Below, piece by piece: positions 13,130 through 45,758 of a DNA stretch of 47,791 nt. The stretch spans positions 10,381,948 through 10,429,738 of the forward strand of contig NC_068981.1 in NCBI RefSeq assembly GCF_001194135.2. The letters are read 5' to 3'. A program made the position numbers and the translations under genes. The DNA comes from Octopus bimaculoides (taxonomy: Eukaryota). How positions within the stretch are numbered: the first letter of the stretch is position 1; each line of letters opens with the position of its first letter. Under the pieces are notes generated by a model. That model did not search any database, was not told the DNA's origin, and saw nothing but the letters and a program-made list of their open reading frames with translations.

Positions 13130-16100
13130 ATGATGGCCGTCCACTCGTGACCGAGGAAGTCCATTTCTGACCATCAAGAACATTGTGNNNNNNNNNNNNN
13201 NNNNNNNNNNNNNNNNNNNNNNNNNNNNNNNNNNNNNNNNNNNNNNNNNNNNNNNNNNNNNNNNNNNNNNNNNNNNNNNNNNNNNNNNNNNNNNNNNNNN
13301 NNNNNNNNNNNNNNNNNNNNNNNNNNNNNNNNNNNNNNNNNNNNNNNNNNNNNNNNNNNNNNNNNNNNNNNNNNNNNNNNNNNNNNNNNNNNNNNNNNNN
13401 NNNNNNNNNNNNNNNNNNNNNNNNNNNNNNNNNNNNNNNNNNNNNNNNNNNNNNNNNNNNNNNNNNNNNNNNNNNNNNNNNNNNNNNNNNNNNNNNNNNN
13501 NNNNNNNNNNNNNNNNNNNNNNNNNNNNNNNNNNNNNNNNNNNNNNNNNNNNNNNNNNNNNNNNNNNNNNNNNNNNNNNNNNNNNNNNNNNNNNNNNNNN
13601 NNNNNNNNNNNNNNNNNNNNNNNNNNNNNNNNNNNNNNNNNNNNNNNNNNNNNNNNNNNNNNNNNNNNNNNNNNNNNNNNNNNNNNNNNNNNNNNNNNNN
13701 NNNNNNNNNNNNNNNNNNNNNNNNNNNNNNNNNNNNNNNNNNNNNNNNNNNNNNNNNNNNNNNNNNNNNNNNNNNNNNNNNNNNNNNNNNNNNNNNNNNN
13801 NNNNNNNNNNNNNNNNNNNNNNNNNNNNNNNNNNNNNNNNNNNNNNNNNNNNNNNNNNNNNNNNNNNNNNNNNNNTATTTCCTCATCCAGGGAGCAAGAA
13901 CGGCTGAGTGTGCTACCCAGGTAGAGAAACTTGTCTACTACCTTCAGAATTGTTCCTTCAACCAAGATAGCTGGTTTCACATATGGATTTCCTGGTGCAG
14001 GCTGGAACATTACAACAGTCTTGTCCAGGCTAATGCTGAGTCCAAATGCTTTGCAAGAAGCAGAAATACGATTCATATGTATTTGCATGTCATCCACTGT
14101 ATGAGTTACTAAGTCACAGTCATCTGCATAAAGGAGGTCACGAATAAGAGACTGGCAAACTTTTGAATTAGCAGCAAATCGGTGCAGATTAAAGAGGTGG
14201 CCAGAAGATCGATATCTGACATATATTCCCAGAGAGCCAAACTTTGCAAAAGCATGAGTAAAGGCAGCAGCAAAGTACAAAGAAAAGAGAGTTGGGGCAA
14301 GGATGTCACTCTGCTTGACATCATTCTCCACAGGAATGGATCCCGCCATGTCACCACCAACATTGACCCAGGCCTCCATCTTATCATGAAATGATTTAAT
14401 TATAGATATAAGGTGATCCGGACAACCAAGTTTGCCAAGTATTTTTCAAAGAAAAATACTTGCCGTGAAAATCATATCCATTGTCCTTCTACCAGATCGG
14501 AAGGCACATTGAGATTTAGATAGGATATCATTTACGAGACACCCATTCAGATGGGTAAGAAGAATATTTGCCAGAACCTTGCCAGCAGCTGATAATAGAG
14601 CAATACCTCTGTAGTTACCACACATTGTTCTGGCTCCTTTTCCTTTATATAGAGGAAGAATAATTGCATCCTTCCAGTCCTTAGGGATTGCACCATCCCT
14701 CCAGACTGCACTAATAAGTTCATGAAGGGATTGTGTGATGTAATTACCACCAAATCNNNNNNNNNNTTGAGATTTAGATAGGATATCATTTACGAGACAC
14801 CCATTCAGATGGGTAAGAAGAATATTTGCCAGAACCTTGCCAGCAGCTGATAATAGAGCAATACCTCTGTAGTTACCACACATTGTTCTGGCTCCTTTTC
14901 CTTTATATAGAGGAAGAATAATTGCATCCTTCCAGTCCTTAGGGATTGCACCATCCCTCCAGACTGCACTAATAAGTTCATGAAGGGACTGTGTGATGTA
15001 ATTACCACCAAATCGCAAGACCTCAGCACAAATTCCATCCTTTCCAGGTGCCCTACCAAGATTCAATTTACTTATTGATGTCATTACTTCATCTATTGAG
15101 GGCGAGGAGTCTAAGAAGCCAATGATAGGTCTTTGTTGCATAGTATCAATCACTGTTTCATCCACAACTGACTCATGGTTTAGGAGTTCAGAGAAGTGTT
15201 CGATCCAGCGACCTGTGATTTCTGTTGATTTAATAAATAGAGTGGAAGAGTCCTTGGAAAGCAAAGGACCTGATGTGGTGCTCTTAGGCCCATAAACTTG
15301 CTTTAGAAGATAGTAAAGCTTCTTGCTGTCATTTGCATCAGCAGCAGCCTGAACATCACGAACAAGATCCTCCCACCAAGTGGTCTGCATCTTCCTGAGA
15401 GACCGCCGCAGTAGTGATTTTACACAGCTACAGTGGGCAAGTGCTAGATTTCGCTGCACAGCAGAAAGTCCTCTGTGTAGAAATACATTGTGGGCATGGC
15501 GCTTTACAACCAATAGTCGCTGAATTTCAGCATCATTTTCATCAAGCCAGTCTCTGTGTTTGACAGTAGCATATCCCAGTGTTTCAGCAACACATTGAAG
15601 AACCTGGTCTCGAAAATCTTCCCATGCTGTAGTATTTTCAATGTTGGACAAGCGAGTCTGAAGCTCTCTCCTCGACACAACATCATATATCTTGTGGACA
15701 TTCAGACGCCGAGGAATGCTGACTGGTCCTCTTCTCACTTTCACTCTAATCATCATTCGGAACTTTGCTCGCACCAGACTGTGGTCTGTCCAGTATTCCG
15801 ATCTATGAAAGGACTTGACATTACAAATGTCATAGATGTCACGCTTGCAGTTGATGACATAATCCAGCAAGGGCCAAAACTTAGACCTTGGATGCATCCA
15901 CGTTGTTGTGTGATCCCCTTTGTGCATAAAATGAGCGCTTGCGATGTAAAGTCCATGTTCATCGCAAAGCTCCAGCAGCATGAGACCATTGCTATTCATT
16001 TTCCCTACACCAAAACGTCCTAGAGAGTTCCATGTTTGCTGGTCTGTTGCAACCCTGGCATTGAAATCCCCCAGTAGAATGACTTTATCAGAATTGGAGA

Positions 16101-26167: not shown

Positions 26168-26274
26168 TCAATGGCATTCATAGTCAATTACTAAGGGCTT
26201 TGAGTCTGGAAAGAATTCACTTTTGCTTGGTCGCAGTAATTCTTGGATATGTTGGACAATTAACTCAATGGCAA
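26168..26274 (-). CDS. UCK1/UCK2: UCK probable last coding exon ([35 protein letters not shown])
   Basis: Acceptor TTTGTTTTTCTAG|TT; the VAIxLIVQHIQ motif is certain. The stop at 26168-26170 assumes no use of the possible donor GTGAAT at 26220. Confidence 0.8.
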
Positions 26275-28735: not shown

Positions 28736-29175
28736 GATGGGCTTCTTTCAGTTTCCGCCTACCAAATCTACTCACAAGGCTTTGACTGAGCCGAGGCTAT
28801 ATTAGAAGACACTTGCCCAAGGCGTCATGGAGTGGGACTGAACCAGGAACCATGTGGTTGGTAAGCAAGCTACTTACCACACAGCTATTCTTGCACCTGC
28901 TTACTACACAGCCACTCCTACACCTTGAAATGTATATATTTTTTATTGTGAATGGTTTTGTTAAGCAGCGCCAATTTTTACACTTCTGTAAATAATAATA
29001 ATAGTATTTTTATAAGCTTAAAGCTTATAGTGTTCATTGTGCAATGACTAAAGAAAATAGTCTAATAATGGGACATATGAGCACTCAACAAAAAAAGTAG
29101 GTTTTCCTGTACATATGGGACCCTTTAGTTATTGCGCAGTGATCGCTATAAGCTTTAAGCTCATAAAATACTAAT

Positions 29176-29251
<76 letters not shown>

Positions 29252-32200
29252 GCACACATATATATATACAAATGCACATATATATTTGCGCGCGCGTGTG
29301 TGTGTATAATTATGTATGTATATACACACATGTATTTCTTTTACCATTTATCTTTTATGCTTTATTTGTTTCAGTCATTAGCCTGTGGCCATGCTGGGGC
29401 ACCGCCTTGAAGAATTTCTAGTCAAATGTATAAGTGGGACAAAGACAGACAAATACAGAACATCTCAAAATAAATACAGTGACGAAAGGGTTAATGCAAA
29501 GAGTTTTACTTGCAACTGTCAGGACAGAAATGAACCTACTTGATTTTAAAATATTTCCAATTTATCAATGCTCAGACAACAATGAATAAATGAATATAAA
29601 CAATTCATGAAAAGAGATAAGCCACATATAAATACTTGATTAACAGTCACTGTGAGTGACATGCCTTGTTATGAGGAATAGCATCTGGGTGTAAAACACT
29701 AATGCAGAAGATATGTCCAACTATACTTAGGTTACGTCTGTCATGAGCAATAGGACGCATAAAGCCAGAGTGTAACTTGGTTTCCATGTTGACTGAGATT
29801 GCAACACTCCCCCTGAATGGGGGATCTAGTCCATCATATCAGCTAGTGCTGGAGCTCATTTACAGTCGTTGAGTGGAGTGGAACAACATGAAATGAAGTG
29901 GTTTTGCATGAGAACACAAAGCATTGCCCAAACCAGTAATGAAAATCATGTTCTTACGATTGTGAGTGTAACATCCTAACTATGATGTCAGGATGGAAAA
30001 CTAGTCATGAAATGATGTTAAAATGGTGAGGATAAAATGCTAAAGAAATGGGTTGTTGTTCTGAAATAATAAACAAGAATCACAAAGAGGACATTGAGGA
30101 AGAGAATGGATAGTCATTCTGAGATGGAAACAGGAACCATGGGGAAGTCATTGAGGAAATAGAAAGAATGATTGATCATTGCAAGATAATGAGTGGAACA
30201 TTGAATTAGGTCATTGGTGATGAATAAATATAATGAGAAAATGGCGAAGGAAAACATGATTTATATTGAAGAGATGATAGAAAATGGAACAGAGTTGGAG
30301 ACAAGAGAAAGAAAAAGAAGCTTAAATGTATAGGAGGAGGAGAAGCGAGGAGGGGGAGGAGAAGCGAGGAGGAGGAGGAGAAGCAAGGAGGAGTGAACAA
30401 AAGAGGCAAAGGGAAATGGCACAGTAGGGTAGGAGGGATTTAAAAAAGAAAGCACATGAAAGTAGGCAGAGCAAGGAAAAATGTGAGTGAGGAAGAGCTA
30501 ATAGAATAAAAGAGAAAGAGGAGTGAAAAGAAAGTGGAGTGTCAGAGCCAAAATGCCAAGAAAGATGAGAAGAAGAAGAAGGAAAGAAGAGAGAAAAAGA
30601 AGAAAAAAATATTAGAAGATGCAAAAGAGTAGAGGCAGAAGTACATACCTGTGTTATCTGCACCTCTTGGTATGATGACATCAGCATATTTCTTTGTCTA
30701 AAACACAAAACAAAGTTTTTAAAAATCATGAATGCAGGATGATACATAAGTCTGCAATTTCTAACATTAATTAAATGTTTTTTTTTTGTTTTGTTTTGGT
30801 TTTGGGGTAAAAAGCCATAATCTGTAGCATAAATGACAACAACAAAATACAATATTCTTTTCTACTCTAGGCACAAGGCCTGAAATTTTGGGGAAGGGGG
30901 AAGGGGTCAGTCGATTGGATCGACCCCGGTATGCAACTAGTACTTAATTTATTGACCCTGGTATGCAACTGGTACTTAATTCATCAACCCTGGTACGCAA
31001 CTGGTACTTAATTTATCGACCTCAAAAAGTTGAAAGTAAAGTCGACCTTGGCAGAATTTCAACTCAAAACATAGCAACGGGCAAAATTTCGCTAGACATT
31101 TTGTCCAGTGTGCTAACAATTCTGCCAGCTTGCTACATTGACAAACAAAATACAATAATGAAAATTTAATTTCATAATGAAAATAGATTTATTTTTATTA
31201 ATTTAAATTTAATTTGAGAAATAGTGATACATCAATATTATCTTTAAAGTACCAGTTACATACTGGGGTTGGTCTAATCGACTGTCCCCTCTCCAAAAAT
31301 TTCGGGCCTTGTGCTTAGAGTAGAAAAGAATATTTATGNNNNNNNNNNNNNNNNNNNNNNNNNNNNNNNNNNNNNNNNNNNNNNNNNNNNNNNNNNNNNN
31401 NNNNNNNNNNNNNNNNNNNNNNNNNNNNNNNNNNNNNNNNNNNNNNNNNNNNNNNNNNNNNNNNNNNNNNNNNNNNNNNNNNNNNNNNNNNNNNNNNNNN
31501 NNNNNNNNNNNNNNNNNNNNNNNNNNNNNNNNNNNNNNNNNNNNNNNNNNNNNNNNNNNNNNNNNNNNNNNNNNNNNNNNNNNNNNNNNNNNNNNNNNNN
31601 NNNNNNNNNNNNNNNNNNNNNNNNNNNNNNNNNNNNNNNNNNNNNNNNNNNNNNNNNNNNNNNNNNNNNNNNNNNNNNNNNNNNNNNNNNNNNNNNNNNN
31701 NNNNNNNNNNNNNNNNNNNNNATATTGTGCTTGAGAAGACCTGACAAGCCAAGTGAGACCATAGCCTGTGGCCTGTGCCAGTGGGTGTAACCAGCCTACT
31801 TATGAATACCCCTCATTCATTGGACAATAAATTTTACTTGCGAAGACCTACTGAGGCAAGCGAAATCAAAATCAAAATTGCTGACATGGCCAATGACAGT
31901 ACCACCTGATTAGCACTCATGCTCATGGAACGTTAAGAGCACATTCGAGTGTGGGGTGTAACCAGCCCACTTATGAGTACCCCTCATTCACTGGACAATG
32001 AACTTTGCTTGCAAGGACCCATTGAGGCAAGTGAAATCAAATCAAAATCACTGACATGGCCAATGACAGTACCACCTGATTGGCACTTGTGCCAGTGGAA
32101 CATTAAAAGCACATCCGAGCGTGATCGTTTCCAGAGCCATGGATTGGCTCCTGTGCCAGTGGCATGTAAAAAGCACCGTTCAAGTGTGATCGTTGCCAGC

Positions 32201-32656
32201 ATCACCTTACTGGCACATGTGCCAGTGGCACGTGAAAAGCAACATTCGAGTGTGGTCATTGCCAATGCCACAAGACTGGCTCCCGTGCAGGGTAGCATGT
32301 AAAAAACACCTTTTGAACGTGGTCGTTGCCAGAACCGCCTGAACACGCCCTTGTGCCAGTGGCACGTAAAAGCACCCACTACACTCTCTGAGTGATTGGC
32401 ATTAGGAAGGGCATCCAGCTGTAGAAACTTTGCCAGATCAGATTGAGCCTGGTGCAGCCTTCTGGCTCACCAGTCCTCAGTCAAATTGTCCAACCTATGC
32501 CAGCATGGAAAGCAGATGTTAAACGACGACGATGATGATGATGATGATGATTGGTCAGAATGAGATAACAAAGTCAAGGCTGTGAAGTGTTTTCAGGACA
32601 TTTCATTATAATGTCCTGAAAACTCTTCACAGCCTTGGCTTTGTTATCTCATCCTG

Positions 32657-33192: not shown

Positions 33193-36100
33193 CATACCCT
33201 TGAAGAATGCATATATGGAACCACAGAATTTATTAATAGGCTAAGATGGCGTGCTTTCTTCTTTTATATGAAAAATAACTGAAAGGACAACAATAATATG
33301 AATGGAACTGACTCTCGTGACAGGAATAACTATTATAATCTCAAAACTTATAGGAATCCACCGTCCAACCCAACTCTTGCTAAATTTGAACATGACCTTA
33401 TGAATGTGATTAAGTGGTTGAAGTTCTCCAAATATACGAATCCTTTCCAGAAATTCCTGTCTGATAAGATATCTGCAATGAAATCATTTCCTGATCTGCA
33501 CGTCCTATCGGATAAAACTGGACACATTTATTCTGTACCGCCGAAGATTTATAATGACTTGATCCTGAAGGAGTTAAACTCTGGTCATAAGCATGCAAGC
33601 AAAAATGCTGTGGATAGAATTAATGACATTCACTTAGAAATCATCTCTGCTTTGGGCCTGCTTGACAGAACCCAGCCTTAGGCTCTAAAAACTCCCCATG
33701 CCCTCTTGAAGGATCATAAGTCTGATTTTTTATCAAATCCTTCGCGTAGGTCGATCTGCTCCACCAAATCTGACTTGGGTAGAATCAGTAAATATATTAT
33801 TGATCATATTATTCCCATCGTGAGGGATAAGGTTCAGCTTCCCTTATGGAAATTTACTGGAGATGTTATCCTATGGTTTGACTCCCTTAAGGATAAACCT
33901 AATTTAGATTTTATACAATTTGGTCTCTCGAACTATTATAATTCTATATCCCCTATATTGCTGAATAAAGCCCTGATTTTCACCTGCAAATTTGTGGATA
34001 TACCTAGTTCGGATATTGATGTGATATTAGCGGCAAGGGAGACCCTCATCTCCTATAACAAACATGATTGGCAGAGAATTGATTCCACCAATTTCTTCGA
34101 TATAACCATGGGGTCTTATGATTCTGCACAGGTGACTGACTTAGTGGGCCTATACCTCCTTTCACAGATTAAGAATTAGTTTTTCTCTCCTCACCAGGGG
34201 GACTGTATAGGGACGATGCACTTCTAGCTGTACATAGCCAGTCTAAAACTGCACTGAATAGATTGAGGAAATCTCTGAGAGGTTTCTTAAAGGATTTCTT
34301 TAATTTTAACATTATCTTTGATGTTAACTCAAGAGTGGTGAATTTCCTGGACATTACATTGTGTTTGGATATGGGTTTATACTACGCATTTCATAAGCCA
34401 AACAAATCCATTTCATATATCAATGTATCGTCCAATTACCCAAAATCCACTATAGATAGCATTGTTACCGCTATTTTGATCAGAATCTCTGATTTATCTG
34501 CAAATGAAGAGATTTTCGATCAACATGCGCCAGTGTACAACAACACTCTAAAATTAAGTGGTTTCAGAACTAAAATCTCACATATACCTAACATGAGATT
34601 TAAAAACAAGATGGCAGGTCTACCACCTAACCATGTCATGGTTGGTCAGGAAAGAAGCAATGCATTACCTGATTGCAACCAAAATAAGCCATTGGTTAGA
34701 AATGTATTTAAAGAGGTTATGAATAGGTATAAGAAGCAAAATAGTGGTAGTGAGGAGATAAGTAAAACCAAGAACTCACGTTTTAGAATAAGGGAAGTAA
34801 TATGATTCACCCCACCTTTTTCTCTTAGGGTAAGAAATTTTCCCAAGATGTTTTTTAGGATTCTGGAGGAGAACTTCCCAAAAGGTCATAAATACTACAG
34901 CATTTGCAATAAGTCATCTATGAAGTTCTCTTACTCAGTAATGCTAAATTTGGCCTCCATTATTGCATCCATAAATAGAAGCAAGTTAAATGGGCAAGTG
35001 CACTGGAGATGTTCTGATACAAACCCCGATCCTGGGCAGGGAGGTTCTGATACGCCTAAGGTTAGTGATGCCAACATGTTGCTCCCACCGGGTGTATCAA
35101 ACCCCATTAATGAGAGATGTGAAGGAGTGAATGTGGGAAACCTGACAAGTACTGTTAGTAGTAGAAATAAGGTTAGGGATGGCTCTGGGAAATCATGTAA
35201 TTGTAGAAACCCTGGATTATGCCCCCTTGATGGGGTCTGTCTAATTACTAATGCAATTTATAAATGCATTGTTAAGGATGAGGATAATTTAGATAAGTTT
35301 TATATAAGTAGTAAAGTAAATCTTAAGGCTAGGTATAGGGCCCACATGAGCTCGTTTTCAAATGAAAAATACTGTAGCTCTACCACACTTGCATCTTATA
35401 TACACAATGTAAAGAGGAATAAGAAGAGTTATTCTCTGGAATGGTCTGTTATTTCAAGAGCCCCTTACTTCAGAGTAAATATAAATAAGTGTAAGTTGTG
35501 TATAAAAGAATCCCTTGCCATACTTAAGACTTTTGGGCCAAAAACTTTGAATAGAGTTACTGAGCTGATTCCTTTTTGCAACCATAGGTTTTCGTCCACC
35601 TTTTTGAAAGTATATAGAAATAAAAGTAGATGTAATAAAATTGTTTAGCGTTATGGGGATTTAAAACTGGTGAGGTTGAATTTCTGTTAACTACAGCCAC
35701 CTGAGTGTTTAGCAATAGACATTTTTTTTAGAAAATTTGAACTGCTCTGTTGATGTTTTTTCTTTTAAATTATATAAGCTTTCCNNNNNNNNNNNNNNNN
35801 NNNNNNNNNNNNNNNNNNNNNNNNNNNNNNNNNNNNNNNNNNNNNNNNNNNNNNNNNNNNNNNNNNNNNNNNNNNNNNNNNNNNNNNNNNNNNNNNNNNN
35901 NNNNNNNNNNNNNNNNNNNNNNNNNNNNNNNNNNNNNNNNNNNNNNNNNNNNNNNNNNNNNNNNNNNNNNNNGAGGGAAATAAAATACTTTTTTCAAATA
36001 TTAAAAAAAATTTTTTTTTAATTTTTAAAAAATATTTTAATTGTCTGATAAAACTTTTTTAGTCAGTGGACATTTATTTTATTTTATTTTTACCTTTACT

Positions 36101-39100
36101 TATTTTATATTTGTCTATTAGGTTTTTTGGTAGTTTTTGAATTTTTAGCTGTTTATATTTAACTTTTTGATAGGCCATTCCTTTTGTATTCTATTTGATT
36201 ATATGTGATTTTATGTATTATTATTTATGTATTTATGTATTATTTATGTATTATTATTTATGTATTTGCGAAACATGGTGTTTTTTATATATGATTAAAT
36301 GTTTGAGGTGTGGTGTTGTATGTAAAGCCGTTGACCCAAATTTAATGTTTGTCCTATAACCAACACTTCTTTATATATATATATATGTCACTTTGAAGTG
36401 CTGAAGATATTCAAACCTGAGGCATTAGAATAATGTAGAAATAAGAATCAAATTTATGCAAATCTAGTTTGCATAAAAATTTATATTTATTCAGCCCTAG
36501 GCCCAATATGCATGGATTTCTCTAAAAGTATATTTAATACACCAAACATATTAAAAATATATAGAGTAATCAATACATATAAAAATATATAAATATATCA
36601 TCATCATCATCATCATCATTAAACAACGATTATGATGATAATGATGATGATGATGATGATGATATATATACATTAAAAATATATTGAAAAATAGATACAT
36701 ATATAGGTCGACTTACAGATTATAAAGTGAAATCATAAAAAGAGTTAAGAGTCTATAAGATAAAAAGTTTGGGTGTTACTAATCCAGTTAATACTCCTAC
36801 AGCCGTTTCTGGGGGTCCGGTTGTCCAGTCATAAAAAAGATATTTACATCTATTTTTGGACACCACCGCTATATGCAAAAGACCAGGGGTTGGAAGTATT
36901 TTTGAGTGGTTGGAAGAAAAGATACAATGCATGATATTTAAGGCTACTGATGGCTCTATAGGAGGGAAGTGTTTTATTTTTCTAAAAATGTTTAAATAGG
37001 TGTGGAAGTTGGCTCTCAACTCTATCCAGAATCATAATGCATAAATGCTGAGTAAAACCTATGTTTACAAGAGTAAATGGTATCAGAAAATTTATTTAAT
37101 ATTGAGTAGTTGTGTAGAAGGAGAATAATTAATGACTCTTTTAAGTATAGTTTACATATATAGTTTTATTATGGACCAAGCCATTGTATGTTTTGTGATT
37201 TAAGATCATGTATGTGCATGGCTAATGATGTCAAGAATTTGTATTTTGTCTTAGTGAAAGAATTTAAGTGAGCTCGATATCAATGCTTAAAATCTATGGT
37301 GCTGCCTATATAGATCTTTGCTTGGTGTTTACTTAGTGTTTCTACATGACATTTATGAACAACATTTTTATGCAGACAAAAGCCTTCAAGCAGGCATTCA
37401 TTGGGTATATGACAATTACAGGTTTTCCTTTTTTGTTCTACCAATTATATTGGTTGTGTTGTTGCTATTTCACAGAAGCACACTGTTCCTTCATTTTAAC
37501 CATAGCAAAAATAAACAAACAGGGGAGCAGCACTGCAAAACAAAGATGCACCATGTGGCAGTACAACAGCACCCAATGATTCTGGTCAACAGACTGATGC
37601 CTGAAGGTTGCATCAAGTGGATTCTTGCAGCAGAAGCCTGAACTGCAACAGGTTTGTCCCACAGAGAACATTTCTGGTTACTTTTGGGTACCCCATCGTA
37701 TGTTACAAAAGCATGGTCTAAAAATGACCAACTGTTGATCCATGTCATACTCTGATATGCATAACGTGCACTTCATTCTCTTCCAGACCAAGGTCAGCAA
37801 TTACAGATGAAAAGGAATCTTGAAAAAAATTAGTTCTAGATTGGTTTTTGGATGTCATCAGAATAATTTGGTAACGGTCTGGTTATTCTACAGATATTTG
37901 TTAAGTTGTAACCCACATGAAGGGTCAAGGACATTTTCATTGCAGATCTTTAAGTGCTTGTCAAAATACTTCACACATTGCACTTGTCTTGTTTCATTAT
38001 AATTTTCTACTGTTGGAGACAACCCCATCCTTAGGAAGTGGATACTATTAATGCAACAATATATTGTCAGTTCTCTGCTTGGCCCTAGTAAGAACTTTTT
38101 TTAATTTTTATTTATAGAATGACAGATCAGTCAGTTTGTATGAGTACACCTTTGCTGTGTCTTACCACCATCCTCAAACCTCAATGTCAGATATATATTT
38201 TGTATGTATACACACACACACACATATATATATATATACATATACATATATATATATATAGATATATGATAATAATATTTCTTATAAGCTTTAAGCTTAA
38301 AAGTGATCACCATATAATGGCTAAAGAAAATAGCTTAATATCGGGGCATATAAGCCCTCGATGGAAAAAAGTGGGTTTTCTGCACGCACCCACTTTTTTT
38401 CTGTCAAGGGTTTATATGCCCCAATATTAGACTGTTTTCTTTAGTCAATATATAGTGATCCCTTATAACCCTTATAAGCTTTAAGCTTATAAAATATTAT
38501 TATCATTTACATAATTGTCACTCATCACCACTGTTCAAATCATTGCAGAAAATATATATATATTGTATATGTGTGTGTGTATATATATATATGTATATGG
38601 AGTCATACCCAATGAGTGGTGCGGCAGCACCATAGGCAACTGCTACAAAAGTAAAGGTGATGCTTTAGATAGAAATAACTACAGGGGTATCAAACTAGAT
38701 CAGGTGATGAAAGTTACAAAGAGGGTCATAGCCCAACTAATTAGGGAAAGAGTTAGCCTAGATGAGATGCAGTTTGGTTTTGTGTCAGGTAGAATCACCA
38801 CTGATGCTATATTTCTGATAAGGCAACTGCAGGAGAAATACCAAGCCAAAGATAAACTTCTGTACTTAGCTTTTGGTGACTTGGAGAAAGCCTTTGCCAT
38901 GGACCCCAATCCCGTATCTGGTGGCCAATGTGGAAACTAGGGATTGACGAGTGGTTGGTGAAAGCTGTATAAGTCCTGTACAGGGATGCTGTCAATAAGG
39001 TGAGGGTTGGCAACAAGTATAGTGAAAAATTCCAGGTAGAAGTAGGGGTTCACCAAGGATCAGTCCTCAGTCCCTCTTATTCATCACAGTCCTCCAGGCA

Positions 39101-42100
39101 GTAACAGAAGAATTCAAGACAAGCTGCCCCTGGGAGTTCCTCTATGCTGATGACCTTGCTCTAATAGCCAAGTCACTACCAGAACTAGCAACGAAGTTTA
39201 GTGTGTGGAAGCAAGGACTAGAATCGAAGGGCCTTAGAGTCAACCTAGCAAAAACCAAAGTCCTAGTAAGTAGGAAGGCAGACAAATCACAAACCCCTTC
39301 AAGTAAATGGTCCTGCTCGATCTGTAGAAAAAGCATAGGTAGAGACTTCATAAGATGTACCCAGTGTAAACTATGGACACATAAGAGGTGCAGCAATATC
39401 ACAGGAAGGCTAACTAGGAAGATTATTTTTGTTTGTGGCAGATGCTCAGGAGCAATAAACACTGAAAATGTGCAGAGAACAACTTCTGCCACATTCCAAA
39501 GAGAAAAACTAGAAGTAGTTGATAGCTTCTGCTACCTAGGTGACCAAGTCTATAGTGGGGGTAGATGCTCTGAGAGCAGAGCTGCTAGAATACGAATAGC
39601 CTGGGCAAAGTTCAGAGAGCTCCTACCACTGCTGGCAATTAAGGGCCTCTCGTTCAGGGTGAAAGGTAGATTGTATGATGCATGTGTTTGAACTGCCATG
39701 CCACATGGCAGTAAAACATGGGCCATAACTGCTGAGGACATGTGTACGCTTGAAAGAAATGAAGCTAGTATGATCCGCTGGATGTGTAATGTCAGTGTGC
39801 ATACACAACAGAGTGTAAGGACCCTGAGGGAAAATTTTGACATAAGAAGCATCAAATGTAGAGTGCAAGAGAGATGACTGCACTGGTATGGTCATGTGTT
39901 ACGTATGGATGAAGACGGCTGTGTGAGGAAGTGCCACACCCTAACAGTGGAGGGAACCTGTGGAAGAGGTAGACACAGGAAGACATGGGATGAGGTGGTG
40001 AAGCATGACCTTCGAATATTGGACCTCACAGAGGTGACGACAAGAGACTGAAACCTTTGGAGATATGTTGTGACTGAGCAGACCTGACAACTAAAGTGAG
40101 ATCGCAGCCGTGGGCCGATGCCAGTGTTGCATGACTGGCCCATTTAAGAGGACCCTTGAGGCATCAGGTGATATGATATCCTTGAGAAGACCTGTTCAGT
40201 CAAGTAAGATTGAAATCATAGCCTTGGCTAGTGTTGCCTGACTGGCATCGACCATGCTCAGATGGTGCTTTTTTATGTGCCACTGGCACAGGAGCCAGTC
40301 AGGTGGCTTTTAAACGGGCCATTGGCATAATTATATTTCACCATCATTTTAATAACATCCACATTTCTATGTTCGCATGGATCCAACAGAGGCAGGTCTT
40401 CTGCAGCCAAAAGCCTTTCCTGTTGCCAACCCTGACCCATTTCCAAGTAAGAAAATATTTCTTCTTGATGGAACATGTTTCTCAAAGAAAAATTAAAATG
40501 AGTGATTCTGCTTGTATGATGGTGGAACTCATTTGTAACTATCACATGATGTCAACACAAGAAGATACAAACATGCACACATACACACACACACGCACGC
40601 ACGCACGCATGTACGTATGTATGTATGTATGTATGTATGTCTGTGTACGTGTGTGTATATATATAGCGTCTAGTAACACAATCTGTATCACGTCCTCACG
40701 TTGTTGTTTTTTTTGTCTTTTTTGAACCTATATATCTATATATATATATATATATATATATNNNNNNNNNNNNNNNNNNNNNNNNNNNNNNNNNNNNNNN
40801 NNNNNNNNNNNNNNNNNNNNNNNNNNNNNNNNNNNNNNNNNNNNNNNNNNNNNNNNNNNNNNNNNNNNNNNNNNNNNNNNNNNNNNNNNNNNNNNNNNNN
40901 NNNNNNNNNNNNNNNNNNNNNNNNNNNNNNNNNNNNNNNNNNNNNNNNNNNNNNNNNNNNNNNNNNNNNNNNNNNNNNNNNNNNNNNNNNNNNNNNNNNN
41001 NNNNNNNNNNNNNNNNNNNNNNNNNNNNNNNNNNNNNNNNNNNNNNNNNNNNNNNNNNNNNNNNNNNNNNNNNNNNNNNNNNNNNNNNNNNNNNNNNNNN
41101 NNNNNNNNNNNNNNNNNNNNNNNNNNNNNNNNNNNNNNNNNNNNNNNNNNNNNNNNNNNNNNNNNNNNNNNNNNNNNNNNNNNNNNNNNNNNNNNNNNNN
41201 NNNNNNNNNNNNNNNNNNNNNNNNNNNNNNNNNNNNNNNNNNNNNNNNNNNNNNNNNNNNNNNNNNNNNNNNNNNNNNNNNNNNNNNNNNNNNNNNNNNN
41301 NNNNNNNNNNNNNNNNNNNNNNNNNNNNNNNNNNNNNNNNNNNNNNNNNNNNNNNNNNNNNNNNNNNNNNNNNNNNNNATATATATATATATATATATAT
41401 CAGTCAGTTGTTCATAAGTCCAGGTTGTATTCCTACCTCTGGTACTAGAGAGGTTATGTGCCTCTGACCAGCAAGTCTCATGTGTCACCTATATTGCTCA
41501 GAACATTATAGGGCAAATCCAAGAGTAACTCTCTGACAGGCCATAACCAACAACTATATTAATTACGAGTGTGTGTGACTGATAGGCTTCATACAATTTC
41601 TTATTTCTTTATTGCCCACAAGGGGCTAAACATAGAGGGGACAAACAAGGACAGACAAAGGGATTAAGTCGATTACATCGACCCCAGTTCGTAACTGGTA
41701 CTTAATTTATCGACCCTGAAAGGGTGAAAGGCAAAGTCGACCTCAGCGGAATTTGAACTCAGAACGTAACGGCAGACAAAATACCGCCTAGCATTTCGCC
41801 CGGCGTGCTAACGATTCTGCCAGCTCGCCGCCTTATACAGTTTCTATTTACCAAATTCACTCATAAAACATTGATCAGCACCCAAAGTGCTGTACAGTGG
41901 CACTGAACTGTGCCACTGAACTGTCACAGTGGGGCTGAACCCAAAACCCTGCGGGTGCAGCTGCCAGAAGTTATGACTCAACACCCACCCGGCCCTTACT
42001 CGTTACCAAATAATTAGAAAAGAAAACAGGACTATCAACAAGATGCCTACTGAAAGAGAAGGAAAAATATCGAAGTACTTACTGGTAGACAGAATTCTTC

Positions 42101-44795
42101 AAATGCAGGTTTGACAAGTGATGTATATTGGTTGAGAATATGCTCAAGATCTCTGCCTCGCAGAACATCTCGATTAACTAGAAACAAGAAAAGAAGAAGA
42201 ACACATTGAGACCATCAGCATTAATTGTTAAACGATGATGATGATGATGATGATGAAATCAATAATAGATCAGGGTTAAAATGAAATCCTAATATCTCTG
42301 ATGTAATTTTATGAAAAGCACTAGAGTTGTGGGTAGTAAAATTTAGCTTTGAAGCAGAAGTGTTGTGATGAAATATTGTTTTCTAAATGCAAAATAATAC
42401 TTGCATATAAATGACTAAAGAATGTATAATTGCATTTTTTGGAATAGTTTCCAGCCTTGTACAGAATGAAGAGGAAGTTGAAGTCCACCAGAAGACGAAT
42501 ATTAAATATTTAGAATATGATGTGGCTTCAAGACACATAAATGCATTCTGCAATGATTAAAAAAGAAAGAAAAAAAAACTTGGTCACAGGATAATTGCAG
42601 GCTACTTTTGATGTATGGAAAATGGTAGGATATACCTCGTCTTGCTAACCGAGTATCTGCATCAGTGTCAACAAACAGTTTCATGTGAAATAGGTCACGG
42701 ATTTCTTTAAAATAAAATGTCAAAATTCCTTCTACGAAAATTACATCAGGCTGCTCCAAAAACACTCCGTTTTCTTCCCTGAATGGTAAAATTAAAAAAA
42801 TTAAAAAATGAATACACAAGAAATAATTAGAGGCTCTGAATTTAAGGTTATGGCAAATGGCCGAAAATAAGCTCTATTCATAATGTATAGTTAGGTGATT
42901 ATTTAATGTTGAACCAGCAGTGAAATGATTTAATTCGCTAATAGAGAAATATTCCTCCTACACATTTTAGCAACAAAAATACATGAAAAAACAGTAAAAT
43001 ATTAATAAGAAAGATATTTCAAGCTGAAAGGTTATGAAACGATATTAGTTCATTGAAAATTGTGTCTTTGTCTCTCAGAGCATTACTTCCTACATAATTA
43101 AATTTTTGCAAAGACTGCTTCGAAGGTTTAAGATGTTTTAGTCTACGATAAACAGAAAGTACTTTTGCACTGTTACCCCATAATTAGAATCAGACTAATC
43201 AACAAATTAAGATTTTCCAGACTGTGGGTGTTTATAATAATAGCTACTAAATAACATAGACTATTCGGGCAGAAAATCTTGTTATCATTGCAAAAGACAT
43301 AAAATATATAGTAGAAAAAAAGTAATCTTCATCAATATCATTTAACGTCCGTTGTCAATGCTGGCATGGGTTGGGTGGTTTGACCAGGGCTGGTAAGCTG
43401 GAAGGCTGCACCAGACTCCAATCTGATTTGACATGGTTTTCTACAGCTGGATGCCCTTTCTAATGCCAACCACTCAGAGAGTGTAATGGGTGTTTTTACA
43501 TGTCACTGGCACAGGTGCCATTTGCATGACACTGGTATCTGCCACATCTGCGATTTTGCTCAGCTTGATGGGTCTTCTTCTAAAGCATAACATAATGCCA
43601 AAGGTCTCAGACATTGCCTCTTTGAGGCCCAAAACTCGAAAGGAACTCAGCCACTTTGCTTCCGTGAGGCCCAGTGTTCGAAAGGAATGGTCCAACGTTC
43701 AAAAGGAAATCTCCAACTTAATTTCGAGGTTATGTTAGAACGCAAAACACAGCATTATTCACCTCAAGTCTTTATGAGAGATTCTCTCAAGGTAACACAG
43801 TATTCTGTGTCCAAACACAAGCACCATGTCAAGTTGAAGATCAAGATTACCTTTTGGTAGTATTACTGCTTCTGCTGTTATTAATTACTTTCTAATAGGT
43901 TGATGAAAATGTTTGTGTGCCGTATTAAGCATTATTTTAACACAGCATTACTTTTAAAATAATGCTTAACACAGTGCACAAACTTTTTCCTCAACCTAGT
44001 AATAGAAAAATATTTTACACACATATGTTAATCTATCATCATCCTCATCAACAACATTTAATGTCCACTTTTCAATGCTTACATGGATCGGACGGAGTTT
44101 GTTGAAGCAGATTTTCTATGGTTGGATAACGTTCCCGCTACCAACTCTTACCTGTTTCCGAGCAAGGTAATATTGCAATATTTCTCCAAAGCCAAACATG
44201 CTTTTCATGGAGGATTGGAAATGAACAACATCACTTGTATGACAGTGATGCTCATTAACCAGAATTATGTGAGGACAAGACAAGGCTGGTAAGCTGGAAG
44301 GCTGCACCAGACTCCAATCTGATTTGGCATGGTTTTCTACGGCTAGATGCCCTTCCTAACGTCAGTCACTCCGAGAATGTTATGGTGTTTTTACATGCCA
44401 CTGGCACAGGTGCCATTTGTATGACACACACACAAAATACACCCACACAACACACACACATATACATATATATAAAATAGGCTCTTTTCAATTTGCATTT
44501 ACCAAATCTACTCACAAGGCTGTGGTTGGCCTGAGGCTATAGTAGAAGACATTTGCCATATAGTGGGACTGAACCCAAAACCATGTGGTTGGGAAGCAAG
44601 CTTCTTACCACACAGCCACGCCTGCACCTATGAATAGTTAAAGCAAAATGCAATTTTAAAATCTGAAAAAAAAAAAAAAAGAAAAGGTGTTTACTTACTT
44701 TGTACATGAAATATAATTATATTTTGGGATCATGATAGGTTTAGAAGCAGCTAAATCCTTCATTGTCTGCAGCATTCTTTTATAGTCAAATGCAT
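26168..44795 (-). CDS. UCK1/UCK2: Uridine-cytidine kinase, spliced 3' portion (5 coding exons; N-terminal exons outside window)
   Basis: Joined translation (D)[145 protein letters not shown]... matches the metazoan UCK motifs DAFD, EGIL, FVDTDxDxRLxRR, [22 protein letters not shown] and VAIxLIVQHI. All intron phases are compatible. Confidence 0.96.
27170..27490 (-). mobile_element. SINE with family-C head, (CA)n hinge and an alternative RTE-like tail
   Basis: Head-side cagtttcc...cacaaggcattggtc...gaaggcacttgccc; tail ccaatcctcacctgtttcc...tatcacatgatgtcaag shared with ~40335-40570 and ~44050-44280. Confidence 0.65.
27555..27832 (+). mobile_element. Degenerate family-E SINE with family-A-like 3' part and (GAT)n tail
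   Basis: ttcttgagcaaaacact...gttgctccagtccactcagctgg core, then ctgaatcttcctgagaactac...ctcagccacttg as in family A, ending gttaaacgctgatgatgat. Confidence 0.65.
27905..28160. mobile_element. MITE with 67-bp perfect terminal inverted repeats
   Basis: 27905-27971 is the exact reverse complement of 28094-28160; similarity continues inward. A related TIR piece (taacatggcagtcc...aggac.aatg) lies at ~17769-17804. Confidence 0.88.
28485..28925 (-). mobile_element. Family C/D SINE, full length, intronic
   Basis: Same head, (CA)n hinge and tail as 6786-7787; short duplication of the 5' end at ~28880-28925. Confidence 0.88.
29003..29172. mobile_element. Fold-back element, AAGCTT-rich TIR family, copy 1
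   Basis: agtattttttataagcttaaagcttatagtgttcattgtgcaatgactaaag mirrored by ctttagttattgcgcagtgatcgctataagctttaagctcataaaatact. Confidence 0.8.
30210..30640. repeat. Polypurine (GA/GGA) low-complexity tract
   Basis: Almost all A/G on the + strand. A comparable CT-rich tract lies at ~1860-2040. Confidence 0.85.
30649..30697 (-). CDS. UCK1/UCK2: UCK internal exon, 49 nt ([16 protein letters not shown])
   Basis: Acceptor GTGTTTTAG|ACA, donor ACAG|GTATGT; near-invariant UCK motif. Confidence 0.95.
30855..31130 (-). mobile_element. Family-B-related SINE with an internal 32-bp triplication
   Basis: ttctactctaggcacaaggcctgaaatttt tail; three units gaccctggtatgcaactggtacttaatttatc at 30922-31017. 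Confidence 0.8.
31724..32550 (+). mobile_element. 3' UTR/end of the same RTE family, ending in (GAT)n
   Basis: cttgagaagacct motif shared with ~40180; internal subrepeats tgccagtggcacgtaaaagcac; terminus gcatggaaagcagatgttaaacgacgacgatgatgat. Confidence 0.8.
32551..32661. repeat. Hairpin: 43-bp core arms (2 mismatches), 7-nt loop
   Basis: atgagataacaaagtcaaggctgtgaagtgttttcaggacatt-tcattat-aatgtcctgaaaactcttcacagccttggctttgttatctcat (32560-32652), extendable ~9 bp further. Confidence 0.9.
32856..33101. repeat. Long hairpin: 111-bp arms, 24-nt loop, abutting the Penelope 5' end
   Basis: 32856-32966 is the reverse complement of 32991-33101 with about 7 substitutions. Confidence 0.92.
33105..35720 (+). 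mobile_element. Penelope-like element (RT + GIY-YIG), decayed, intronic and antisense to UCK
   Basis: N-terminal [12 protein letters not shown]; SDKTGHIY; [20 protein letters not shown]; GLYRDD at 34200-34217; VNFLDITL; I*FTPPFS; linker [16 protein letters not shown]; IY...YIS(G) with C-terminal CKLC. Two in-frame stops and one frameshift (~34180-34200). Confidence 0.92.
37320..37985 (+). pseudogene. Mutator-like (MULE) transposase fossil
   Basis: Frameshifted pieces in MULE order and spacing: [14 protein letters not shown](YM)..LFYQLY..LMPE..(VD)..[34 protein letters not shown], compared with HWYMDGTF..LFYQLY..LNPE..DFE..VFPNxxIxGCFFH..IQxLGL..TNNxVEGWH..HP. Confidence 0.55.
38266..38506. 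mobile_element. Fold-back element, AAGCTT-rich TIR family, copy 2
   Basis: ~110-120-bp imperfect arms around an ~11-nt loop (agtgggt-tttctgcacgc-acccact); homologous to 29003-29172. Confidence 0.82.
38599..40303 (+). mobile_element. 5'-truncated RTE-clade LINE with RT, PHD-like finger and part of the 3' UTR (intronic, antisense)
   Basis: [37 protein letters not shown]-like, [24 protein letters not shown] motifs; several CGA>TGA stops. Confidence 0.92.
41602..41832 (-). mobile_element. SINE family B inserted into a family-C SINE
   Basis: Near-identical to 25071-25290; probable TSD atacaatttct/atacagtttct at 41591-41601 and 41835-41845; family-C sequence resumes after it. Confidence 0.88.
42083..42177 (-). 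CDS. UCK1/UCK2: UCK internal exon, 95 nt ([32 protein letters not shown])
   Basis: Acceptor TTCTTTTCTTGTTTCTAG|TT, donor CCA|GTAAGT; too short for the ORF track, translated by hand. Confidence 0.95.
42636..42778 (-). CDS. UCK1/UCK2: UCK internal exon, 143 nt ([19 protein letters not shown]...DTRLARR)
   Basis: Acceptor TTTACCATTCAG|G, donor CGAG|GTATAT; contains the EGIL and [10 protein letters not shown] motifs. Confidence 0.96.
43337..43700 (-). mobile_element. RTE 3'-end fragment including ORF tail
   Basis: catttaacgtccgttgtcaatgctggcatggg...; minus-strand peptide FRTLGLTEA resembles the RTE ORF end near 40010. Further fragments at ~26545-26705, ~44275-44415 and ~47695-47791. Confidence 0.78.
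44420..44630 (-). mobile_element. Family C/D SINE head with hinge
   Basis: accaaatctactcacaaggc...ggctatagtagaagaca...gggactgaaccc...cttaccacacagccacgcctgcacct. Confidence 0.75.
44699..44795 (-). CDS. UCK1/UCK2: UCK internal exon, 97 nt (D/AFD...YNYISCT/K)
   Basis: Acceptor TTTTTCAG|AT, donor AA|GTAAGT; phase 1 in, phase 2 out. Confidence 0.93.
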
Positions 44796-45285: not shown

Positions 45286-45758
45286 GGGTTGGACAAAATA
45301 ATGGAAACACCTAGCATCACAGCATCATAATTTTGAAATATCTATAAACCATCAAAAGCTTGTTTATTTTTATGTGTTGATTTATTATCAGTGGTGCTTA
45401 ATATGTTTTGCTAAAATTGCTGTTTCTTTTCAGATATCATTAGTAAAAGGTAATTAAAATTCATTAAAATGACAGATCTATCAGACTTTCAAACAGGTCA
45501 AATTGTTGGTGCTCATATGGCAGGTGCTAGCATAACGAAAACAGCCGAAATGTTTGGTGTATCAAGAAGTACTGTCTCGAAAGTAATGACAGCTTTTGAG
45601 AAAGAGGAAAAAAACCCTCCTCATTAAAACAAAACTCCGGAAGAAAACCAAAACTTTCAGATAGGGATCATCAGACTCTTACATGAATTGTTAGAAAGGA
45701 TCACATAAGTACAGCTCCCAAAATTACTGCAGAGCTTAATGACCATCTCGAGAACCCA
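45283..45758 (+). mobile_element. Tc1-like transposon 5' fragment
   Basis: TA|CAGGGGTTGGACAAAATAATGGAAACACC TIR; ORF from 45469 MTDLSDFQTGQIVGAHMAGASITKTAEMFGVSRSTVSKVM...NSGRKPKLSDRD (paired-like HTH + GRPR-like motif). Confidence 0.87.

Follow-up and report, generated by a model that had tools for sequence, protein, structure and literature searches.

A natural cysteine at the substrate-specificity position of uridine-cytidine kinase 2 in Octopus bimaculoides and other coleoid cephalopods

The stretch of DNA analysed here comprises 47,791 nucleotides (nt) of the Octopus bimaculoides genome (NC_068981.1, positions 10,381,948-10,429,738; hereafter the window, whose positions are used for all exon and feature coordinates), and it contains five coding exons, those at the 3' end of the annotated Octopus gene for uridine-cytidine kinase 2 (UCK2). 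In the uridine-cytidine kinase (UCK) of Thermus thermophilus (ttCK), Tyr93 has been changed to all 19 other residues, and this saturation mutagenesis singled out the site as the sole determinant of uridine acceptance (Tomoike et al. 2017, PMC5614712, Table 3). Crystal structures place Tyr93 at the position of His117 of human UCK2 (hsUCK2) (PMC5614712). A preliminary description of the window had noted a Cys at this position, and had proposed that the octopus enzyme may have an altered uridine/cytidine preference or be a specialised paralogue. In this study, we report that the Cys is genuine and is fixed across the coleoids sampled, and we weigh what it may mean for substrate preference. The gene itself is an ordinary, already annotated salvage enzyme, and the new part is small: a natural Cys at a position defined by mutagenesis, in every coleoid lineage sampled.

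Gene structure and family membership

Five coding exons of the UCK2 gene were located on the minus strand by tblastn, using a UCK2 probe and then the octopus protein, and the coordinates were checked by script. The hairpin exon (97 nt, 44699-44795) codes for the large beta-hairpin, which in the UCK fold closes over the nucleoside, and its translation matches residues 88-120 of the O. bimaculoides UCK2 protein exactly. It is bordered by an acceptor AG at 44797-44796 and a donor GTAAGT at 44698-44693, and reads on the minus strand ttcAG/AT GCA TTT GAC TAT ... ATC CCA AAA TAT AAT TAT ATT TCA TGT ACA AA/GTAAGT (slashes mark the exon borders). The TGT codon at 44704-44706 encodes Cys118 (octopus numbering), the counterpart of His117 in human UCK2 and of Tyr93 in the T. 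thermophilus UCK. The peptide attributed to this exon in the preliminary description stands as far as the Thr; its final Lys is only partly encoded there, AA closing the exon at 44699 and the G opening the next exon at 42778.

Downstream of the hairpin exon, an exon of 143 nt (42636-42778) carries the G of the split Lys codon, 47 amino acids and a further G, and includes the equivalents of Glu135, Ile137 and Arg166. The LID-region exon (95 nt, 42083-42177) encodes the equivalents of Arg169, Arg174, Arg176 and Gln184 and has a one-residue deletion compared with most UCKs. A 49-nt exon (30649-30697) contributes 16 amino acids and a G, and the coding part of the last exon (26168-26274) a (V) and 34 amino acids, with the stop codon TGA at 26170-26168. 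All five exons have AG/GT borders and, when spliced, give one open frame of 163 residues that ends in the TGA stop; the hairpin exon is therefore a genuine exon and no chance open reading frame (ORF). The coding sequence for the first 87 residues, with the P-loop, lies upstream, outside the window. Since the frame ends 35 residues past the kinase core with no UPRT domain, the octopus protein is of the short UCK1/2 type and not a UCKL1.

Two proteins named uridine-cytidine kinase 2, O. bimaculoides XP_014776173.1 and O. vulgaris CAI9715810.1, matched the 163-residue translation at 100% identity. In a large protein collection the translation was also 99% identical to O. sinensis XP_029636961.1 (uridine-cytidine kinase 2), 90% identical to an Argonauta hians protein and 84% identical to a further cluster, which a cluster look-up showed to include 'udk' of the cuttlefish Acanthosepion (Sepia) pharaonis. 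Family profiles were run on the O. sinensis protein at full length (99% identity over the 163 residues of the window). It matched Pfam PF00485 (PRK) with an E value of 3.6e-45 (154.6 bits, cut-off 22) and NCBIfam NF004018 uridine kinase with 219.5 bits (cut-off 180), and scored 213.3 bits against TIGR00235 udk, slightly below the cut-off of 220.3. The UPRT-like domain PF14681, by which UCKL1 is recognised, gave no match in the full-length protein. A P-loop of the form GxxxSGKS (GGTASGKSS, with Lys33/Ser34) and the equivalent of Asp62 were found in the full-length orthologues. By every UCK-family test run the octopus gene belongs to the family, with the sole exception of the His associated with dual specificity.

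Three further observations concern the gene model. At the residue of the split Lys codon (44699-44700 and 42778), two residues past Cys118, most UCKs have Arg and cuttlefish transcripts read AGG; an adenosine-to-inosine (A-to-I) edit of the middle A in the octopus AA/G codon would recode Lys to Arg. The LID of Octopus (exon 42083-42177) reads RDV-LRGRD, compared with RDVQLRGRD in Argonauta and RDVQERGRD in the cuttlefish cluster, and so is one residue shorter than in nearly all UCKs; a similar deletion occurs in a fish UCK1, so it is probably tolerated. The Glu preceding RGRD, usually conserved, is Leu in both Octopus and Argonauta. A second annotated O. vulgaris isoform, CAI9715811.1, has a low-complexity tail in place of the last exon, at a point that corresponds to the donor site at 30649; the tail resembles intron read-through and is probably an annotation artefact.

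The cysteine at the specificity position

In a phmmer comparison with PDB sequences, the octopus hairpin segment aligned without gaps to human UCK2 ipvydfvshsrkee, and Cys118 fell on His117 once the 2-residue N-terminal offset of chain 1udw_A was taken into account. An AlphaFold model, built from a 40-sequence alignment, had a mean predicted local distance difference test (pLDDT) score of 83.9, with 93 for residues 111-120, and placed Cys118 at the turn of the large hairpin, between strands 108-114 and 119-127. The best PDB matches of the model were all human UCK2, with target-normalised template modelling (TM) scores of 0.89-0.94; superposition on 6n54_A gave a target-normalised TM score of 0.93 and a root-mean-square deviation of 1.6 Å, at 64% identity. 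The ungapped alignment, the superposition and the published structures (PMC5614712) agree that the two positions are equivalent, and the concern that Cys might lie at a non-equivalent site can be set aside. Re-reading of the codon on the minus strand likewise confirmed TGT at the His117 position, and the human motif IPVYDFVSHSR, to which the hairpin exon aligns, had been quoted correctly.

The remainder of the active site is that of a UCK. In this family Asp62 is the catalytic base, Asp84 and Arg166 contact the ribose, and Arg169, Arg174 and Arg176 are the LID arginines. A multiple alignment showed K33, S34, D62, Y65, F83, D84, Y112, E135, I137, R166, R169, R174, R176 and Q184 to be the same as in human UCK2. 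The base contact of Tyr112 is thus kept (IPKY), as had been noted earlier. Phe114 of human UCK2 is replaced by Tyr in the octopus, which is also the residue in nearly all protostomes examined. PMC9163393 summarises the roles of Asp62, Asp84, Arg166, Tyr112 and His117. Because the remaining catalytic machinery is intact, the octopus protein is most likely an active nucleoside kinase. At the His117/Tyr93 column itself, dual specificity goes with His or, weakly, Gln (Tomoike et al. 2017), and the octopus has neither; its Cys falls among the non-His, non-Gln residues that characterise the ttCK type.

Every one of the 13 cephalopod sequences carries Cys at the column: those of the octopuses O. bimaculoides, O. 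vulgaris and O. sinensis, of Argonauta hians, and of the Sepia cluster including its Logan members. Within the Sepia cluster, protein P0125 has entries in 89 sample blocks, on contigs 1-3 kb long. Six of its Logan contigs were read; the 756-nt coding sequence was intronless in each, so these contigs appear to be assembled transcripts, and all six read ...TAT AAC TAT ATT TCT TGT GCA AGG.... The TGT codon is therefore present in both coleoid superorders and is transcribed in the cuttlefish-group cluster. The earlier judgement that a single sequencing error is unlikely is borne out by the same Cys in five named cephalopod species and by TGT in the transcript contigs. It is also correct that TGT has no A through which A-to-I editing could restore His, and that CAT to TGT needs two substitutions. 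An alternative or duplicated hairpin exon with His or Asn was sought by lenient tblastn through the whole window, up to 47791, using human, oyster, Solemya, Littorina and octopus exon peptides, and one hairpin exon only was present. Cys118 is genuine and is fixed across the coleoids sampled (octopuses, argonaut and cuttlefish group). Being common to all of them, it was probably established no later than their last common ancestor. No Nautilus or other basal cephalopod sequence was identified among the Logan hits by which an origin on the coleoid stem could be dated apart from one on the cephalopod stem.

The column is variable well beyond the cephalopods. Among the best 120 matches together with the cephalopod cluster members, the tally was 66 His, 49 Asn, 13 Cys (all cephalopod) and 2 Ser. 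Among 150 representatives of 50%-identity clusters, taken from an exhaustive HMMER scan, it was 88 His, 31 Asn, 9 Ser, 6 Tyr, 5 Phe, 2 Cys and 9 others, that is, 59% His, 21% Asn and about 1% Cys, with about 40% of the clusters lacking His. Asn was seen in bivalves (Solemya, oysters, scallops, clams), the limpet Patella, Gigantopelta, insects and a centipede, and His in vertebrates, caenogastropod and heterobranch snails, an annelid and a horseshoe crab. The two Cys representatives, both from outside the cephalopods, were P0196 (…DVETCAH…) and P0272 (…SYAECRR…). These alignments point to a position that is evolutionarily labile in animals, where it may be His, Asn, Ser or Cys. The notion of a conserved His lost uniquely in cephalopods does not hold, given the frequency of Asn in both tallies; among invertebrate UCKs, Asn occurs about as often as His. 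The preliminary description had recognised that its case would suffer if Cys were common in invertebrate UCKs. Taken literally that is not so, Cys being confined to cephalopods among the close matches, but the objection retains part of its force, since a residue other than His is common in invertebrates.

A neighbour-joining tree computed from 124 sequences put the coleoid proteins together as one clade inside the mollusc UCK2-like group; by distance, the Asn-type sequences of scallops, Solemya, Patella and oysters came closest to them. A match list reaching down to about 60% identity contained no second short UCK from any cephalopod. From the nested position of the clade, and since no second copy was listed, the gene is best regarded as a single orthologue; there is no sign of the specialised paralogue that had been suggested, and this candidate is ruled out as far as the data go. 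On parsimony, the nearest relatives being Asn, the ancestral mollusc state was likely Asn. The coleoid change would then probably have been Asn to Cys in two nucleotide steps, via Ser or Tyr, and the His of apogastropods would probably have arisen from Asn by one substitution.

The hairpin has diverged along with this residue. Over its 47 residues, coleoids share 78% identity with one another and 38% with other molluscs, which among themselves share 52%; in the rest of the core the corresponding figures are 92%, 84% and 89%. The hairpin thus appears to have been remodelled on the coleoid stem and conserved thereafter, a pattern we read as purifying selection on the new state.

Predicted substrate preference

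The preliminary description stated that Tyr restricts the Thermus enzyme to cytidine and that His restores uridine activity, and the published kinetics confirm this (PMC5614712). The kcat/KM values (M-1 s-1) for cytidine and uridine were 3.8e4 and 2.6e4 for ttCK Y93H, a cytidine preference of about 1.5-fold; 1.2e4 and 7.2e2 for Y93Q (about 17-fold); 8.7e3 and 4.1e1 for Y93N (about 210-fold); and 9.0e3 and 2.3e1 for Y93C (about 390-fold). Measurable uridine kinetics in ttCK were obtained with His and, weakly, Gln only. In the human enzyme the values were 1.0e5 and 9.0e4 for the wild type (about 1.1-fold), and 4.7e4 and 9.6e2 for H117Y (about 49-fold) (PMC5614712).

Cys118 occupies the one base-contacting position of the hairpin known to decide uridine acceptance. 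By analogy with Y93C, Y93N and H117Y, the octopus UCK would most likely phosphorylate cytidine much better than uridine, and the salvage of uridine would fall to a His-bearing UCKL1, or to uridine phosphorylase together with UPRT. The altered uridine/cytidine preference proposed earlier is plausible in this light, with Y93C as a precedent, and stands as a prediction by analogy.

A cephalopod UCKL1 was sought using a caddisfly UCKL1 (P0227) as query, and the best 120 matches listed (P0279-P0397) were all from insects. His was at the column in 120 of 120 of these insect UCKL1 sequences, whereas short UCKs of the same or closely related insect species (Pectinophora, Daktulosphaira, Bacillus rossius and a sister Schistocerca species; P0027, P0051, P0073, P0079, P0103) have Asn or Ser. 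This suggests that insect UCKL1 and short UCK differ systematically at the specificity residue, which would fit either a division of labour or a redundancy that lets the residue of the short UCK drift. Given this difference in insects, the same arrangement is plausible in cephalopods.

Our preferred reading, to which we give a probability of roughly 0.6, is that the octopus gene encodes an active, single short UCK whose Cys is fixed in coleoids, probably derives from Asn, and most likely makes the enzyme prefer cytidine. Several points weigh against it. The mutagenesis scaffold is bacterial and about 41% identical to the octopus protein, and its authors cannot explain the size of the effect (PMC5614712). 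Moreover, His and Asn are frequently exchanged among animals. For these reasons a strong cytidine preference of the octopus UCK is, by analogy, given roughly even odds. One explanation of the exchange would be that these enzymes can do without uridine activity, another that the animal scaffold tolerates the change; repeated switching could equally indicate a residue of less importance in that scaffold. Position 114, which is Tyr in the Asn and Cys lineages, could help to bind O4 and so add to such tolerance. In addition, the transcript evidence for TGT comes from the Sepia cluster and not from octopus RNA, and the case for UCKL1 as a uridine back-up from insect and not cephalopod sequences. 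The papers citing the two Tomoike studies are concerned with cancer and biocatalysis, and no kinetics or other characterisation of a Cys- or Asn-type animal UCK was found among them; nor was a description of a natural Cys-type UCK, or of a characterised Asn-type animal UCK, found in the literature.

The strongest alternative is that the substitution is near-neutral and that the enzyme keeps dual uridine/cytidine activity with Cys (or Asn), perhaps because uracil O4 is reached via a water molecule or with the help of Tyr114. It would account for a column that among animals has repeatedly changed from His to Asn or back, and that can also be Ser, and for the Tyr, not Phe, that the Asn and Cys lineages nearly always have at 114; the Ser and Thr mutants of ttCK, moreover, keep somewhat more uridine activity, for which the authors invoke a bridging water (PMC5614712). 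However, every non-His, non-Gln residue in ttCK lost at least 98% of the uridine efficiency of Y93H, and human H117Y behaved likewise (PMC5614712). The His retained in all 120 insect UCKL1 sequences further suggests that His is selected where uridine activity is needed. We consider retained dual activity unlikely on balance, and favour cytidine preference.

Far less probable is a neofunctionalised or specially regulated kinase, in which the active-site thiol would, for example, make the activity redox-sensitive or turn the preference towards a modified pyrimidine nucleoside or an analogue. Cys is rare at the column outside cephalopods (2 of 150 cluster representatives), and a hairpin that changed greatly on the coleoid stem and has stayed conserved since then (38% to other molluscs, 78% within coleoids) would be in keeping with a new role. 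Yet the second canonical short UCK that would free the Cys-type enzyme for such a role was not seen in cephalopods, all other ligand contacts are canonical, and the data point to no particular new substrate.

A spurious or downstream-corrected Cys, whether from an error in sequencing or assembly, from a pseudogene exon, from a skipped alternative exon or through an RNA edit to His, is effectively refuted: although the assembly is gapped, with 11 runs of N, and has at least one likely scaffolding duplication, the Cys recurs in three Octopus species, Argonauta and Acanthosepion/Sepia with the same TGT in transcript contigs, the splice sites are canonical and the frame intact, the window holds no second copy of the hairpin exon, and UGU offers no adenosine to edit.

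If the mutagenesis rule transfers to animals, the cephalopod UCK would be a cytidine kinase, as would the Asn-type UCKs of bivalves and insects; the reconstruction of pyrimidine salvage in these animals would change, and RNA labelling by uridine analogues (4-thiouridine, 5-ethynyluridine) would be affected. If it does not, the Cys would be a neutral lineage substitution. A bolder extension, that coleoids have a natural, Cys-based, cytidine-restricted UCK, which would be the first natural Cys-type, and that most protostome short UCKs (Asn, Ser or Cys) are misnamed cytidine kinases with uridine left to His-bearing UCKL1, is put forward tentatively and is somewhat doubtful. In either case the Cys is a modest lineage variant, unsurprising to a specialist aware of the variability of the column, and it offers an easy natural test of whether one residue predicts specificity.

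Other features of the window and comparison with known systems

Two copies of a 258-bp unit, 99% identical, flank a 10-N gap at 14757-14766 (14509-15014), in a reverse-transcriptase ORF of which about 80 residues are duplicated; the duplication looks like a scaffolding or gap-closing artefact and not biology. Retroelement debris, consisting of ORFs with weak RVT_1 matches and an ORF with a PHD/C1-like zinc finger, lies 3' of the gene and in its large intron (13174-15999, minus strand; 38515-38940 and 39203-39691, plus strand). Four ORFs of 127, 157, 180 and 266 amino acids run along the plus strand at 33298-35648, inside the intron of 11 kb that follows the LID exon. None of the four had a Pfam match at E <= 0.001, and the run could represent a mobile element that is as yet unclassified.

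In the intron preceding the hairpin exon, a short ORF (MTDLSDFQTGQIVGAHMAGASITKTAEMFGVSRSTVSKVM..., 45469-45627, plus strand) matches homeodomain-like and Sleeping-Beauty-type transposase helix-turn-helix models, and by these matches is a Tc1/mariner-type transposon remnant. A dispersed repeat resembling a short interspersed nuclear element (SINE) (…GTGGTAAGAAGCTTGCTTCCCAACCACATGGTT…GGTTCAGTCCCACT…, 44530-44650, minus strand) lies about 50 bp 3' of the donor of the hairpin exon, and a second copy at 28848-28880 (minus strand) has 2 mismatches in 33 bases. A tRNA origin of this repeat was tested by scanning the window with ARAGORN, and no tRNA was found. A tandem array at 32073-32371 has a 66-bp unit with the palindrome-like TGGCACATGTGCCAGTGGCAC, and an 'HLCQWH'-coding sequence like that of the array recurs near 44380-44460.

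Among characterised enzymes, human UCK2 (PDB 1UEJ, 1UDW, 6N53-55) resembles the octopus protein in its fold, its length class and the lack of a UPRT domain. It differs in having His117, a hydrogen bond donor to uracil O4, where the octopus has Cys, and Phe114 where the octopus has Tyr; the octopus LID is one residue shorter (RDV-LRGRD), and the hairpin is otherwise strongly diverged. UCKL1 shares the homologous PF00485 kinase domain but carries a C-terminal UPRT-like PF14681 domain that the octopus protein is without.

The cytidine-specific ttCK of T. thermophilus HB8 (TTHA0578; PDB 3ASZ) is a natural UCK without His at the same column, and its engineered Y93C variant, with a cytidine preference of about 390-fold, has the exact cephalopod residue (PMC5614712). 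It differs in being bacterial and about 41% identical to the octopus protein; its natural residue is Tyr, and Cys occurs there as a laboratory mutant only. The closest relatives, by identity (65-73%) and by the tree, are the Asn-type short UCKs of bivalves, limpets, insects and myriapods, named 'uridine-cytidine kinase 2-like', which share with the octopus the lack of His, Tyr114 and the YNY/YDY hairpin motif, and have Asn where coleoids have Cys. Judged from sequence and by analogy, the octopus UCK may best be likened to the Y93C mutant of the cytidine-restricted Thermus enzyme, and grouped with the Asn-type UCKs of protostomes.

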